Virus record (IMG/VR): IMGVR_UViG_3300007513_000004 | Span: 1-64,000 of that record | Length of the DNA stretch: 64,000 nucleotides | Direction: 5' to 3' (one strand) | In this document: positions 1,878 to 52,430 of the stretch, piece by piece | How the letters are laid out: every line of letters starts with the position of its first letter | Numbering within the stretch: position 1 is the stretch's first letter | Made by a program: the position numbers and the translations under genes | Notes under the pieces: model-generated | The model's input: the letters and a program-made list of their open reading frames with translations, nothing else | What the model was told of the DNA's origin: nothing | Database searches by the model: none

Positions 1878-2227
1878 TGGTGGAGGCGGGCGGAATCGAA
1901 CCGCCGTCCAAAGCAACTCATACTTCAAGTCATTCACAAGCTTGTCTAGATTTTATAATCTAGCAAATCCTCCCGCTAAGTTATACCATCATATCCGCAG
2001 GATGATATGAGTCGAGTATTTTTTGTTATCAGTGATACTAGTCCACCTATCTCACGTTGGGTAACAAGGCCCTGAGAAGCCCCGGAACTATGCCGCTAAA
2101 GCGACTGGTTCGTAGTAATAATTGTTATTGGCAATTATAGTTTTTTGCAACAAGTTTTGAGTCATTCGTTACCGTAGACTGCTTGCACTATTCGCACTTA
2201 CTACCCTGTCGATACCATTTCGCCCCC
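1878..2227 (-). ncRNA. ssrA: tmRNA; tag peptide ANNNYYYEPVALAA* (2132-2088)
   Basis: 5' GGGGGCGAAATGGTATCGAC, 3' GGTTCGATTCCGCCCGCCTCCACCA, resume context ATAATT-GCC, tag ending ALAA. Confidence 0.96.
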
Positions 2228-35399: not shown

Positions 35400-36047
35400 A
35401 TCACATTACTACCGTTAACTATCCATTTATTCAAACATGTTCCAAACTTCATAAGCCAAACATGTGCCAGCAAGAATCCATAGTGACGATAAAACGCCAG
35501 AGCCAGCAATAATCAATAATGAGTCCATCAAAACCTCCTTCGTCAAGGGCAGTCGTCGCCCTCTAACCCTATGTAGTCGGTGTAAATTTCTTGACAAAAA
35601 ACTTGTAATTACTTTACAAATTGATTTGTAAAACTTTTGCCCAGAACTGGACATTAAAAATCGAATTCTATTTTATCATCGGCTATTTTAGAGTGAAGGA
35701 AAAACGAAGGCAATGCAAAGAGGCAACCAGAATGGCCGTCACGAATCATATCTGATATCCAATTAGTGTTAGAATAGATATATTCAAAGAGCGGGCTGTC
35801 AAGCGGTTACTTTACCGAAAGCGGCGCTACTGTTTAGTCCTTGAGTACCGGGGAAACTCGGTACTCATTTATCTTTATTGTAAATTTTTTGCCCGAAGGG
35901 AAAACCCCGAAGGCACCTAGTACCTTCGGGGTTGAGTTTAATGCCATTGGCATGACCCGCTCACGGGTGAATTATCGGAATGTTTCTGTTTCCAGCCGCT
36001 TGACCCGTTGCAACGGCGCGGCATCTTGTTTATAGTAACCTCCTCGA

Positions 36048-41795: not shown

Positions 41796-41829
41796 TGGCA
41801 TAGTTCTTGCTAATGCAAGAATCGTGCCA
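41796..41829. promoter_or_regulatory. head-to-head pair of sigma54 consensus sites
   Basis: TGGCAT-AGTTC-TTGCT (+) and TGGCAC-GATTC-TTGCA (-). Confidence 0.7.
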
Positions 41830-44454: not shown

Positions 44455-44530
44455 GGGTCCATAGCTCAACAGGCAGAGCGCCGGACTTTTAATCCGTAGG
44501 TTCAGGGTTCGAGTCCCTGTGGACTCACCA
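44455..44530 (+). tRNA. tRNA-Lys(TTT), second copy
   Basis: cloverleaf, loop CT-TTT-AA, CCA end. Confidence 0.95.
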
Positions 44531-44544
44531 TTTATCAAACTTTT

Positions 44545-44629
44545 GCCCGAGTGGTGGAATCGGTATACACAGCAGACTTAAAATCTGCCGCCTTTGGGCT
44601 TGCCGGTTCGAGTCCGGCCTCGGGTACCA
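44545..44629 (+). tRNA. tRNA-Leu(TAA)
   Basis: class II cloverleaf, loop CT-TAA-AA, CCA end. Confidence 0.95.
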
Positions 44630-45010: not shown

Positions 45011-45049
45011 GCCTTTCTTTATCTTAAATGTCAAACTTTTGCCCGAGGG

Positions 45050-47933: not shown

Positions 47934-48368
47934 TCACCGTCTAATTTTTACATTAGGTATGTCAGCAATCCGGTCAGCCAGTAAATCTCGACCATCAGGA
48001 CAAGAGCGATTCAACATAGTCAGTATAGACTGAATCTCAACCCAAAGCTGTTCTGGGAGCACAAGACAGGAGTATCCAAGATAAACCTTGACCCAATCCT
48101 CTCCCAAGCTACGAAAGGCGCAATCGGATGCAGCGTAAAGATGCTCCGGCTTTACCGAGAAGATTGCGCCCTTTACTGTAAATTCGATGGGTTCCGTATC
48201 AGTAAAGGCAAAGCCACCAGGGTCGAGGTGGGCAACATCAATAGCGGTTTTTTCCTCTGGAGTAACACTATATCGTTCAGCTATGTCATCCTCACACACG
48301 CTCGTACCAACGAGTGAAATGTGCAAACGAATTTTGGAATCTGCGGGGTAACGGATTGACTCAAGCAT
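47934..48368 (-). CDS. hypothetical protein
   Basis: GGAGG SD; promoter 48384-48412. Confidence 0.75.
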   Translation of the reverse strand: MLESIRYPADSKIRLHISLVGTSVCEDDIAERYSVTPEEKTAIDVAHLDPGGFAFTDTEPIEFTVKGAIFSVKPEHLYAASDCAFRSLGEDWVKVYLGYSCLVLPEQLWVEIQSILTMLNRSCPDGRDLLADRIADIPNVKIRR

Positions 48369-48515
48369 ACTTCCTCCTGTGTGTATGTATGTGATGATAA
48401 AATAATACTGGAAAAGTCTGGGGAAAAGATTGACATACGTGTGAATGTTTTGCCCAAATGGGAGTGGGCCCGGTGGAATTACCCCAATTCCACCGGGCGG
48501 CGTGTGCCCATCACC

Positions 48516-48986
48516 TCACACGCCCTCTCGCTCCCAAGGGGGACGCGGGTTACCATTTCTCCAATCATGCTCCCAACGCTCACGCATGTTAGAGATACCC
48601 GTAGCATCAACCCCGTGCTGATTGCGAGTTGCCAACTCCTCATCTGTGCAGCCTCCATCATAAAGAGAGACTACCGAAACCTCGTATCCATGTTCCTCTG
48701 CCATACGCAAGTACGGCTCCATTTCCCATCGCTGGGTAAAAGTATTGTGAACCACCACGGTCGCTGCCAGTCGATTCCTCATGGAATTTTCGGCCTGCTC
48801 CTGACACCAAAAGTGTGCAGCGGGCAGCTTTCGAGGGTTAAAATTGTAAATTCCATCCTCATCAAGAAAGAAATCATCAGCGGCAAAGAAGCACTTGCCA
48901 AGCGGTGCGCCTACGTTCAGTAGCATCCGACCAAGCCTTGTCTTTCCTGAACCGGAAATTCCGCGAACCAAAATAAGTCTATACAT
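48516..48986 (-). CDS. P-loop kinase/NTPase (AAA_33, N4BP2-like)
   Basis: LVRGISGSGKT, AADDFF, AHFWCQ, VVHNTFT..WE..PY. Confidence 0.88.
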   Translation of the reverse strand: MYRLILVRGISGSGKTRLGRMLLNVGAPLGKCFFAADDFFLDEDGIYNFNPRKLPAAHFWCQEQAENSMRNRLAATVVVHNTFTQRWEMEPYLRMAEEHGYEVSVVSLYDGGCTDEELATRNQHGVDATGISNMRERWEHDWRNGNPRPPWEREGV

Positions 48987-49067
48987 GCGTGTCCTCGTTG
49001 GGCAAAAAATTGTCATACTTCTCCCTTGGAGGCCCCCGGCACAATGCCGGGGAACCTCGGGAGGCGG

Positions 49068-49511
49068 CTACTTCTTGACGGCTGCTCCATCAAACTTGAC
49101 GTAGCCTTTGGTAGCAATCCGGGGAAGGTTATCGACAATCTCCGAATCAAACATATCGAGCATCGTCCGATACTTGACCTGCTCATCGGCGGTCAACGAG
49201 CTAACCCGCTTCTCCATCGCAGCTTTGGTCAGACCGGAAAGCCGATTCCAAAGTTCGATAATGTGGTCCGGCGCATACTCTCGCGTGCATCCAAGCTCTT
49301 GAAGGAGCATACAGATAGTCGGAACCGACCGTGCGCGGTTTGTGCCTGCGCGTGTACTGGATGGTCCTCGGGAGAGGACACCTTCCACCTCGGCGGTGAA
49401 CTTGACATGCACATCCGACTCGGGTACAAGCACGGATTCGTCGTTGCAGGATTGAAGGTTGATAACTTTGGCGAGGGCCAACTGTTCGATGGGCGAAAGG
49501 GTCTGGGACAT
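49068..49511 (-). CDS. hypothetical protein
   Basis: AGGAG SD; promoter 49559-49587. Confidence 0.75.
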   Translation of the reverse strand: MSQTLSPIEQLALAKVINLQSCNDESVLVPESDVHVKFTAEVEGVLSRGPSSTRAGTNRARSVPTICMLLQELGCTREYAPDHIIELWNRLSGLTKAAMEKRVSSLTADEQVKYRTMLDMFDSEIVDNLPRIATKGYVKFDGAAVKK

Positions 49512-49640
49512 TGATTGTCTCTCCTAAAGAGGGTGGGTTTGTCTCCCTCTTACATCATAATGTAGCCGATGATAAAACAGAATCGAAAAATGAAATGTTA
49601 AAGTTTTGCCCAGCGGTCTGCAATAATCATGCCAAAAAGT

Positions 49641-49674
49641 TGGCACAGTTCTTGCATTAGCAAGAAGCATGCCA
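49641..49674. promoter_or_regulatory. head-to-head pair of sigma54 consensus sites
   Basis: TGGCAC-AGTTC-TTGCA (+), TGGCAT-GCTTC-TTGCT (-). Confidence 0.7.
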
Positions 49675-49752
49675 GTTAATTAAGTTAAAGTTTTGCCCGA
49701 TTAAATAAATAATTAACTTAATCTGGGCAAAAAGTTGACATTTAAAACAAAT

Positions 49753-50021
49753 AAAAAGAAGGGGGGCAAAGGCCCCTCTGGGTAGCGCGGCTTGTGTGCA
49801 AAACAGCAGCAGGGGAGCTTGCTCTTTGAGAGGTGTGTGGTTCGCGACCCGAACAAATCTCGTGACATCCCTTGGCTTTTCAGTTTGCCTTGCCTTCCCA
49901 GAGGGGCATAGCTGCTCATTACTTTACCGGGGGTCTATCCTGTACCCCGAACAGTTACACGGTATGAGTCAACCGTGCGGTGTATAACTAGTATTCCACC
50001 GTTTCTGAATCTCTCTCCTTG
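49753..50021 (-). ncRNA. candidate 270-nt structured RNA
   Basis: promoter 50028-50056, multiple stems, terminal hairpin plus U-tract, no credible ORF. Confidence 0.55.
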
Positions 50022-50093
50022 TGTTCTAAAGTAATTGATGCAAAAATCGAAATGAAAAACATATTTGCAAAGTTTTTGCCCATACGTAAGGCT

Positions 50094-50127
50094 TGGCACA
50101 CTTTTTGCTAATGCAAGAAACATGCCA
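50094..50127. promoter_or_regulatory. head-to-head pair of sigma54 consensus sites
   Basis: TGGCAC-ACTTT-TTGCT (+), TGGCAT-GTTTC-TTGCA (-). Confidence 0.7.
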
Positions 50128-50181
50128 ACAAACATGTCAATGTTTTGCCCTTGGGCAAAAGTTTGACACAAAGCATAAAAG

Positions 50182-50205
50182 AAGGCCGGGCATATGCCCG
50201 GCCTT
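50182..50205 (-). terminator. intrinsic terminator of ardC
   Basis: AAGGCCGGGC stem followed by CTTTT on the minus strand. Confidence 0.75.
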
Positions 50206-50234
50206 GCGTATGGCCCCACTCGGGGCGTCTGGCC

Positions 50235-51176
50235 CTACTTGCGCTGGCCCTCCCCCTTGTCGATGAGGTAGCGCATGACCTTGCCCGCTTCATTCGCGGC
50301 CCGCTGAATCACGGTAGGGTCATCCTTGAGAGCCTTCCGCCAGTTGGCAAGGTAGGCCACATGGTTGTCCATCAAACCCTCTCGCTTGACTCCCAGATAG
50401 GCGCATGTGAACGCCGCGCCAATCTCGGCAACCAACTCCTCGTAAGCATACGCCTCCGAGCCGAAGCCCGTGAACTTGACGATGCCATCCCGGTTGAGTC
50501 GGTCCTTTGCACCTGACCAGTGGGCGTGCTCATGGATGGTAGTGGCCCAAAAATCAGCAACAGTGGTGAAGGCTCCGGCCTCGGGCACCATGATGTAGTC
50601 CTCGCGAGGGGAGTAGAAAGCACGCCCGCCGCCCGTGCGGAAATCCGCGTCGATACCTTTGACAAGTGCAGCCGCCGCCTCATGGCCCACCTTTGGGTCA
50701 ACCTCTGAAATCTCGGCAGACGGTAGGGGGTTCGTCGTTTGCTGGTTGTTGAAAGTGTACGAGCTTCCAAATCCGATGAACTTTGTGGACCCCTTGACCA
50801 AGAGACTCGCGCCACAGGGCTTGCACTTTTTTGCAAATCCACATGGGCGGCCACAACTGTTGCAGGCCAGCTTCGGGAAGAAAATAGGAGTCCCCTTCTC
50901 GCCTTTGCGCACGTAGTTGCCGCTCTTTTGCCACTGGCCAAACCCGGCCCAACGGTTGTCACCAAACTGAACCCCGGCCATCATCAGCATAAAGCCATTG
51001 AAGTTTCCGCCGTAGGCGCGGCCCGTCAGGATGTTGATTGGCATCCCACCAGCAAGGGACCTATCCCACGGCATAATCCAAGGGGTGCCGTCCTCGGGCG
51101 GGTTGTCGAGGGCTTCGATAATCTGCGCGGCTATACGCTCGCACGTCTCTTGAATCTTGTCGTTGGGCTTGCTCAT
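50235..51176 (-). CDS. ardC: ArdC-family antirestriction / ssDNA-binding protein with an inserted Zn-ribbon
   Basis: WIMPW, N..TGR.Y.G.N, VRKGEKG, RAFYSP..D.I, HEHAHW, YAYEELVAEIGAAF; promoter 51225-51253. Confidence 0.9.
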   Translation of the reverse strand: MSKPNDKIQETCERIAAQIIEALDNPPEDGTPWIMPWDRSLAGGMPINILTGRAYGGNFNGFMLMMAGVQFGDNRWAGFGQWQKSGNYVRKGEKGTPIFFPKLACNSCGRPCGFAKKCKPCGASLLVKGSTKFIGFGSSYTFNNQQTTNPLPSAEISEVDPKVGHEAAAALVKGIDADFRTGGGRAFYSPREDYIMVPEAGAFTTVADFWATTIHEHAHWSGAKDRLNRDGIVKFTGFGSEAYAYEELVAEIGAAFTCAYLGVKREGLMDNHVAYLANWRKALKDDPTVIQRAANEAGKVMRYLIDKGEGQRK

Positions 51177-51432
51177 GGTGGTCCTCCGGGGACTAAAGCG
51201 GGTATTGACGGGGGCTTACATACATGAGTAACCGATGCTCAAATAGAAATGAAAAAACCAATTGCCAATCTTTTGCCCAGACAGGTGTGCTTCTTTATGC
51301 AAAAACCATGCCAACCCAATTGACAAAGTTTTGCCCAGACTCAGACGCATTTCCTTGCAAGAACCATGCCAATGTGTATGAAAATGTTTTGCCCAAATGT
51401 AAAAACATATTTTACAAAACCTCGACAGAGGT

Positions 51433-51466
51433 TGGCATGGTTCTTGCTAATGCAAGAACTGTGCCA
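51433..51466. promoter_or_regulatory. head-to-head pair of sigma54 consensus sites
   Basis: TGGCAT-GGTTC-TTGCT (+), TGGCAC-AGTTC-TTGCA (-). Confidence 0.7.
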
Positions 51467-51567
51467 TATGTTATGCAAATGTTTTGCCCAATGCTTTGGG
51501 CAAAAAAATGACATGTGTACGAAAATACACACGTCTTTACATTTTCTTTACATCGGACAAAAGAAAA

Positions 51568-51595
51568 CCCCTCACCGCCTTTCGGCGGTGAGGGG
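51568..51595 (-). terminator. intrinsic terminator
   Basis: 12-bp stem CCCCTCACCGCC-GAAA-GGCGGTGAGGGG plus TTTTCTTTT. Confidence 0.88.
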
Positions 51596-51623
51596 GTAGG
51601 AGGTTAGCCCCGCCCCGGCCCTA

Positions 51624-52322
51624 CTATGCGTAGGGGATGGGGAGGGGGGAGGAGGCGTCAAACTCGACCCAATCGGCGTCCAGCCACATGTCGGCGGGGA
51701 CGTGCCGCCACTCGATGCGAACTCGGCGGTAGCGGCCAGCGTAGGCACCGGAGCCGAAGGGACGGAGCCAGCACACGGGCTTGCCTTTCGGGGTGGTCAG
51801 GTCCTGACCCTCGGCCCAGACCTTGCTGGCATCGGCGCGGCGCATCATCAGCACCCCGTCAATCTCGGTCAGGAGGCAGACGTAAACCGGGACACCAGCA
51901 TCGACGGCGGCAAGGAAGGCGGCCAGCGGGGTTCCGGCCTTGGCACAGTCGGCCTCAGCATCCCAGACGCCGCTGGTCAGGTCGCGATTCCCGTAGGGGT
52001 CGCCGGTGCTTCCCTTGAAGTTGACCGGGACCATTTCGACAATCGCCGGGTAGGGGTGGCCCGCGAGCGACGGGTGAACCACGGGCCACACGTCATCAAA
52101 GAGGCCCAGACCCCGGCCACGCTGCAAGGGGCGGCCCAATCGGTCCAGGTCGCCATTCTGCGCGACACCATCCCGGCACGGAGGGACCGCGACACCAGCC
52201 GCTTCCATCCAATATGCGACGTGCTTGTACCCGTCGCCCACTCCGGCACCCATTCCGCCCGCTTCCGCGAGGCGGCAGCCGCCCTCAATCTCAAGTCCGT
52301 TTCTGTCGTTCTTCTTAGTCAT
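51624..52322 (-). CDS. hypothetical protein, very GC-rich
   Basis: GGAGG SD; promoter 52339-52367; terminator downstream. Confidence 0.8.
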   Translation of the reverse strand: MTKKNDRNGLEIEGGCRLAEAGGMGAGVGDGYKHVAYWMEAAGVAVPPCRDGVAQNGDLDRLGRPLQRGRGLGLFDDVWPVVHPSLAGHPYPAIVEMVPVNFKGSTGDPYGNRDLTSGVWDAEADCAKAGTPLAAFLAAVDAGVPVYVCLLTEIDGVLMMRRADASKVWAEGQDLTTPKGKPVCWLRPFGSGAYAGRYRRVRIEWRHVPADMWLDADWVEFDASSPLPIPYA

Positions 52323-52395
52323 AGTGACCTCCTACACATAGGTAAGTGATGCTCAAACAGAAATGAAAAACTATTGCCCAAACAAAACGAAAGGT

Positions 52396-52430
52396 TGGCA
52401 CGCGTCTTGCTATATGCACAAAGCATGCCA
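52396..52430. promoter_or_regulatory. head-to-head pair of sigma54-like sites (one mismatch)
   Basis: TGGCAC-GCGTC-TTGCT (+), TGGCAT-GCTTT-GTGCA (-). Confidence 0.6.

Follow-up and report, generated by a model that had tools for sequence, protein, structure and literature searches.

The window analysed here comprises the first 64 kb (64,000 nucleotides) of the IMG/VR virus record IMGVR_UViG_3300007513_000004, a linear record of 223,402 bp rated as 67% complete, which therefore belongs to a jumbo phage. A tmRNA (tag ANNNYYYEPVALAA) and nine scattered tRNA genes are carried within it. The G+C content rises from 0.35–0.40 on the left of the window to 0.50–0.55 around 48–52 kb. In this latter region the genes lie on the minus strand and encode an ArdC-type anti-restriction protein (Pfam ArdcN), an unknown protein of 147 amino acids and an AAA_33/polynucleotide kinase-like protein. 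Between ardC and the 147-aa gene, a promoter-like motif is followed by about 270 nt without a credible ORF and by an intrinsic terminator-like hairpin and T-run (Table 1). The original prediction described this as a promoter-to-terminator unit without a gene, with two hairpins, an 11-bp long-range stem whose 3′ arm overlaps the terminator and sigma-54 pairs and boxes on both sides, and read it as an early non-coding RNA or a switch. The observation was confirmed, with each of these features being found at the position given for it. The interpretation was partly supported, strongly as regards a non-coding RNA and only in part as regards a switch, while the early timing remains an inference.

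Table 1. Positions of the features discussed, in window coordinates
Feature	Position	Strand	Description
tmRNA gene	1878–2227		
tRNA genes (nine)	10790–44629		Two on the plus strand, at 44455–44629
Shorter paralogue unit	35670–35867	+	Promoter motif 35670–35686; RNA core 35706–35830; terminator 35842–35867 plus T-run; no ORF
GGGCAAAA box with hairpin	45029–45044	−	Followed within about 20 nt by a strong hairpin and T-run
AAA_33/polynucleotide kinase-like gene	48516–49016	−	
147-aa gene	49068–49511	−	
Leader hairpin of the 147-aa gene	49525–49556	−	AAGAGGG...CCCTCTT, just before the Shine-Dalgarno sequence
68-aa ATG ORF	49713–49919	−	Runs through the terminator
Terminator-like hairpin	49753–49776	−	GGGGC-CTTT-GCCCC and T-run; listed by the terminator scan; tail copies the 5′ arm of P4
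P4, 3′ arm	49772–49782	−	Last 5–8 nt are also the 5′ half of the terminator hairpin
Junction core	49783–49896	−	P4 extension GGC/GCT, P5 hairpin, long P6 arm, small P7 hairpin; P6 has an invariant internal loop (CAC opposite AAAGA) and apical palindrome TCGCGA (49847–49842)
P4, 5′ arm	49897–49907	−	11 pairs, 97% paired
P3 hairpin	49930–49948	−	GGGGT/ACCCC (49948–49944/49934–49930), loop ACAGGATAG
P2 hairpin	49958–49977	−	CACGGT/ACCGTG (49977–49972/49963–49958), invariant UGACU in the loop, 100% of cells paired
P1 hairpin	49978–50001	−	CGGTG/CACCG, loop palindrome ACTAGT (49992–49987)
Shine-Dalgarno remnant	50011–50020	−	AAGGAGAGAG, no start codon; AAGGAG at 50020–50015
Promoter-like motif	50028–50056	−	Core 50031–50047; can be read as −35 TTCATT, 17-nt conserved spacer, −10 TACTTT; inferred start near 50021
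GGGCAAAA box	50066–50081	−	Recurrent phage regulatory motif
Sigma-54-type pair	50094–50109 and 50112–50127	+ and −	Minus-strand copy (TGGCAT-N5-TTGCA) points towards the unit; paired face to face
Inverted GGGCAAAA pair	50135–50168		Near-perfect, just after a terminator
ardC	50235–51176	−	

The promoter-like motif is not a canonical sigma-70 site, with none being predicted at this position. It is one of 23 copies in the window of the motif RTTTNNNCATCNNYTAY, where 0.12 were expected, and is preceded by about 15 nt by one of 29 copies of a GGGCAAAA box, where 0.03 were expected. In the copies examined these motifs lie at a fixed distance upstream of a Shine-Dalgarno sequence and a start codon, which follow about 20–30 nt later. 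Reading them as a promoter is therefore a reasonable inference, as are the −35/−10 assignment and the start site. The box, in the form GGGCAAAA-NN-TT-NN-CA, is concentrated at 25.8–52 kb (25854–51489), mostly on the minus strand ahead of genes, and also occurs as near-perfect inverted pairs just after terminators. It may be a site for a phage regulator. At one copy (45029–45044) there is no room for a gene before the next hairpin, making it either a very short unit or a regulatory site. Thirteen exact sigma-54-type consensus sites (TGGCAY-N5-TTGCW) were found between 34343 and 52411 against 0.29 expected, with none elsewhere in the 223 kb. Several form overlapping face-to-face pairs that together make a 34-bp inverted repeat (41796–41829, 49641–49674, 50094–50127 and 51433–51466), and the pairs are conserved in relatives, including the one at 50094–50127 upstream of the unit. 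No gene for sigma-54 or for an enhancer-binding protein was detected in the record, and these sites are regarded as putative.

No frame of the unit holds a credible ORF (no alternative genetic code was used), and no Pfam or PHROG hit was obtained. The only long frame, of 68 aa, has no Shine-Dalgarno sequence, crosses the terminator and is broken by indels in relatives. The fold energy of the single sequence was no better than that of shuffled sequences (z of −1.15 and −1.38), and on this sequence alone the stems could be due to chance.

To further investigate the unit, relatives were sought through the neighbouring 147-aa protein, for which about 50 homologs at 46–89% identity were found in marine metagenomes. 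Their contigs (designated L010, L012 and so on) showed a conserved order of ardC, a regulatory cassette, usually an ORF of 53–91 aa, a block of about 245 nt, another cassette, the 147-aa gene and the kinase-like gene, with the 245-nt block corresponding to the unit. A scan of JGI metagenome contigs with two invariant stretches of the block, independent of any gene, found 11 more loci, all with the same synteny. This gave 14 copies, 13 of them distinct. The block is absent from the lineages of L020–22, L032, L045 and L051. Scans of viral contigs seeded with the 147-aa protein and with ArdC, and three DNA pattern scans of the same contigs, returned nothing, as did blastn of the region against GenBank phages. 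A large structural protein found only a second contig of the same phage, which stops short of the unit. This contig of 67.7 kb from another sample (L008, IMGVR_UViG_3300007512_002757) matches the phage where checked, with a 1,450-aa protein at 100% identity and the same start of the ORF at 51624–52322, and ends inside that ORF at the edge of the G+C-rich region. A degenerate core pattern searched in 185,579 species genomes gave 17 hits, all attributable to chance, with none matching the covariance model (R1) built for the RNA. It should also be noted that L016 (NZAS01000011.1, GCA_002686195.1), a 69-kb contig carrying the ardC–RNA–147-aa block, is deposited in a genome bin labelled Phycisphaerae, which may reflect a phage contig binned with the bacterium or be a hint to the host.

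Comparison of the copies indicated why no gene is present here. In L010, L012, L016, L023, L025 and L047, the same promoter motif and Shine-Dalgarno sequence are followed by the small ORF of 53–91 aa, with the RNA block beginning a few bases after its stop codon. The N-terminal 40 residues of its product are conserved, and the long form ends in a SAP/Rho_N-like helix-extended-helix domain scoring just under the Pfam thresholds. In the window and its 97%-identical relatives L038–L041, the ORF has been deleted and the Shine-Dalgarno remnant is joined directly to the RNA leader. The joint lies between two short GGAG-type repeats seen in L010, from which deletion by microhomology is inferred. No copy of the small ORF exists anywhere in the 223 kb. 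The ORF is also deleted in the L028 group, which has the RNA directly behind the promoter motif, and in L049 the RNA, with its own promoter motif, lies ahead of the small gene. The RNA is therefore the constant element and the ORF is optional. In L049 (1453–1640) and L051 (350–530), a second, unrelated conserved non-coding block follows the small ORF, including a T-arm-like GGTTCGATTCC or GAGTTCGAGTCTC and a terminator but giving no Rfam or ARAGORN call. The slot behind the small ORF seems to host different RNA modules.

The region also appears to be mosaic, as seen on comparing 48000–52400 of the window with L012, L016, L023, L025 and L028. The ardC of the window is 85–88% identical in nucleotides to that of L016 and L028 but 63–64% to that of L012, L023 and L025, while the RNA and the 147-aa gene show the opposite ranking. 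The repeated cassettes may be recombination points, and this G+C-rich stretch (genes at 0.50–0.67) differs from the rest of the phage (0.35–0.40).

RNAalifold analysis of MAFFT alignments recovered the predicted hairpins and long stem. On the structure-naive MAFFT alignment, 97.0% of cells were standard pairs against 39–52% when the partners were slid by 1–3 columns, and 14 pairs changed on both sides against 0–2 when slid. None of 500 column shuffles reached the observed values on four of the five measures; however, as the 13 sequences are related, the shuffle test overstates significance and the slid controls, which are equally clear, are the fairer comparison. After realignment to model R1, which fixes the register of P1, 96.4% of cells were paired, with 19 compensatory pairs against 1–4 in the slid controls. 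Compensatory changes were found in P1 (5 of 6 pairs, for example CGACAAC/GTTGTCG in L016), P2 (2 pairs), P3 (GGGGT/ACCCC becoming AGAGGT/ACCTCT in L012), P4 (3 pairs) and the P6 arm (6 pairs). In P4 these are a C-G to U-A change in L010, a U-A to C-G change in L023 and the innermost pair, which alternates between G-C and A-U in five copies each. The P4 extension, P5 and P7 are invariant or ambiguous and are not regarded as settled. G·U cells outnumber A·C cells by 47 to 9, and antisense model scores (12–24 bits) are ten-fold lower than those of the sense strand (214–292 bits), which places the structural selection on the minus strand. Indels in the block are not multiples of three. In all eight pairs compared, the RNA was more conserved in nucleotides than the 147-aa gene, for example 87% against 75% for L025.

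A shorter paralogue was detected on the plus strand of the window, where model R1 scored 21.2 bits (E of 4e-7 over that stretch and 1e-4 over 260 kb). This stretch has its own copy of the promoter motif and an 11-bp terminator with a T-run. It shares the invariant strings of the core and the internal loop of CAC opposite AAAGA, with the helices on either side of the loop being compensated (UGU/GCA becoming CGU/GCG and GAGA/UCUC becoming GAAU/AUUC). It lacks P1–P3 and the long P4, its terminator does not overlap its closing stem and no plus-strand gene follows it. No other copy was found in the rest of the record.

At the 3′ end, the last 5–8 nt of the 3′ arm of P4 can instead pair with a tail that repeats the start of the 5′ arm. 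This alternative hairpin of 7–8 bp is present in 12 of 13 copies. In L023 a change in the 3′ arm is matched in both the 5′ arm and the tail, whereas in L010 it is matched in the 5′ arm only. The hairpin is followed directly by a U-run in the window, L038, L039 and L012 only, by a separate strong terminator in L010, L023, L025 and L044, and by the next GGGCAAAA box with no U-run or terminator in L016, L036, L028, L047 and L049. Forced-conformer folding favoured P4 by 6–10 kcal/mol in the window and by 0 to 13 kcal/mol across the copies, being about 0 in L025 and about 3 in L012 and L047. The equilibrium probability of the terminator hairpin in the window copy is about 1e-4, so efficient termination here is uncertain. 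The mutual exclusion is real and looks selected, but its coupling to termination is lineage-specific. It is read as a device for forming the RNA's own 3′ end, or for setting its conformation, and not as a conserved genetic switch on the next gene.

Every copy was also found to carry a palindromic hexamer in the P1 loop (ACUAGU or ACCGGU) and another in the P6 apex (UCGCGA or CCAUGG), with three of the four combinations occurring. The P6 apex is an 8-nt loop in which purines flank the palindrome, and these are the only two palindromic hexamers in the 244-nt window copy. As the central two bases of such a palindrome cannot pair within one hairpin, keeping the symmetry through a change points to pairing between molecules or to a dimeric binder. 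With only two variants of each loop, this is a lead and not a result.

The RNA matched no family of Rfam 15. The gathering-threshold scan of the whole window found only the tmRNA and tRNAs, nothing lay on the minus strand over 49761–50004 at E up to 10, and the divergent copies of L028, L047 and L049 also gave nothing. ARAGORN found no cloverleaf or T-arm at the element in the window or in relatives. The 147-aa neighbor offered no functional hint, having no Pfam or PHROG family and an AlphaFold model (pLDDT 79.5) without a PDB fold match. A number of structural readings were rejected. A pseudoknot between AGCAGC, 5′ of P4, and GCUGCU is broken in L047 and L049 without compensation, a kink-turn at the CAC/AAAGA loop is excluded by the covarying register of the GAGA/UCUC helix, and a CsrA-sponge role for the P3 loop is contradicted by its GGA becoming GGG in L016 and L028. 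The extra helix GGUAAAG/CUUUGCC of the minimum-energy fold is not kept even in 97%-identical relatives. The hairpin in the leader of the 147-aa gene keeps its pairing with different sequences in L010, L012 and L016, and pairing of the 5′ arm of the RNA with it was rejected as the leader varies while the arm does not.

The result suggests that the unit is a gene for a structured non-coding RNA of about 250–270 nt, of a family absent from Rfam and found only in a clade of marine jumbo phages, always between ardC and the 147-aa gene. That this is a real structured RNA is held with high confidence. The analysis itself establishes that the sequence and helices are conserved with compensatory changes, that the minus strand is the one under structural selection, that the upstream small ORF is dispensable and that a second, shorter copy of the junction core exists in the same phage. 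The fold consists of three 5′ hairpins followed by a multi-helix junction closed by P4. The absence of an ORF, the conservation and the motifs on either side agree with a stand-alone small RNA gene, although the promoter and terminator are inferred from sequence alone. What is inferred is that the RNA is expressed, from the recurrent phage motif and possibly also from the sigma-54-type site upstream, that it ends at the terminator-like hairpin, and that it acts in trans as a folded particle, binding a protein or associating with itself, rather than regulating the next gene in cis. This fuller statement is considered more likely than not, with the role in trans being argued from context. In this view the tail hairpin most likely serves formation of the RNA's own 3′ end, forming locally during transcription and triggering termination, after which the released RNA would settle into the more stable P4 fold.

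A cis-acting termination/antitermination switch, riboswitch-like or factor-dependent, is possible but unlikely. In this reading, folding of the junction, perhaps helped by a ligand or protein, would let P4 sequester the 5′ half of the terminator and allow read-through into the 147-aa gene, while otherwise the tail hairpin would form and transcription would stop. The architecture is that of an ON switch, the conserved alternative hairpin would fit it, the covariation in L023 extends to the tail, the hairpin is a perfect 8-bp stem followed by a U-run in L038, L039 and L012, and the two states are near-isoenergetic in some copies. However, the U-run is not conserved with the junction domain, the downstream gene has its own box, sigma-54-type sites and promoter motif in every lineage, and in most lineages the RNA lies 3′ of an ORF and not in a 5′ leader. 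The L010 compensation, the terminator of the paralogue and the stability of P4 in the window copy also count against this reading.

The remaining alternatives are considered very unlikely. The block could be a 3′ UTR or functionless remnant of the small ORF's transcription unit, given its usual position directly behind that ORF and the deletion scar, but it shows compensatory changes, exceeds the neighboring 147-aa gene in conservation, is kept in three lineages lacking the upstream ORF and has a paralogue of its core. A DNA-level element, such as a replication or recombination site or single-strand hairpins, might be suggested by palindromes resembling binding sites for dimeric proteins, by the many repeated boxes and by ArdC, which binds single-stranded DNA in other systems. 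Against this, G·U wobble is tolerated on the minus strand only, making a duplex-DNA site unlikely, the orientation relative to the promoter motif and terminator is fixed in every copy, and long-range, irregular helices with an invariant asymmetric internal loop are typical of RNA. A small protein from an unusual start codon is the least likely. A Shine-Dalgarno-like AAGGAG and the 68-aa ATG ORF are present, but no start codon lies within reach of the former (the nearest options giving a 13-codon ATT frame or a 3-codon GTG frame), and the latter is frame-shifted in L010 and L012.

Among characterized systems, the ROOL and GOLLD RNAs of phages and prophages are likewise phage-encoded, often lie in regions with tRNA genes, have elaborate covariation-supported folds without a known function and assemble into RNA-only multimers through kissing loops and A-minor contacts (bioRxiv 10.1101/2024.12.08.627333). 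The RNA described here is much smaller, at about 245 nt against hundreds (many GOLLD members exceed 800 nt), and matches neither family in Rfam. Stable RNAs C and D (species 1 and 2) of phage T4 are small RNAs encoded beside the phage tRNA genes that are not known to have an assigned function; their size and host group differ. The loop palindromes follow the design of a kissing-loop dimerization site, as in the HIV-1 dimerisation initiation site and the loop-loop contacts of phi29 pRNA, without homology to either. ON-type riboswitches with an intrinsic terminator, for example the pbuE adenine riboswitch, share a junction domain closed by a helix whose 3′ strand is part of a terminator hairpin, but here the closing helix is long and more stable than the terminator, the U-run is not conserved, the element is not in the leader of the next gene, and there is no known ligand and no Rfam match.

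A more speculative possibility, considered unlikely but compatible with the structured RNA and with a role in trans, is that the RNA is a compact self-associating particle. The two palindromic loops would make symmetric kissing contacts between copies, giving dimers or larger RNA-only assemblies, and the competing P4 and tail hairpins might gate the assembly-competent fold. It would then be a small relative in kind of the ROOL/GOLLD nanocages, made by a jumbo phage during infection.

Few phage RNAs with elaborate conserved folds are known, and none of the larger ones is known to have an assigned function. This one is short enough for routine probing, mutagenesis and structural work, and comes with natural variants with and without the upstream ORF, with three kinds of 3′ end and with swapped loop palindromes, in addition to an internal paralogue. 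As it sits in a region that also holds an anti-restriction gene, a polynucleotide kinase-like gene, tRNAs and a tmRNA, working out what it binds could reveal a new way in which large marine phages handle host RNA or defence systems, and would also test whether RNA-only assemblies exist at this small size.
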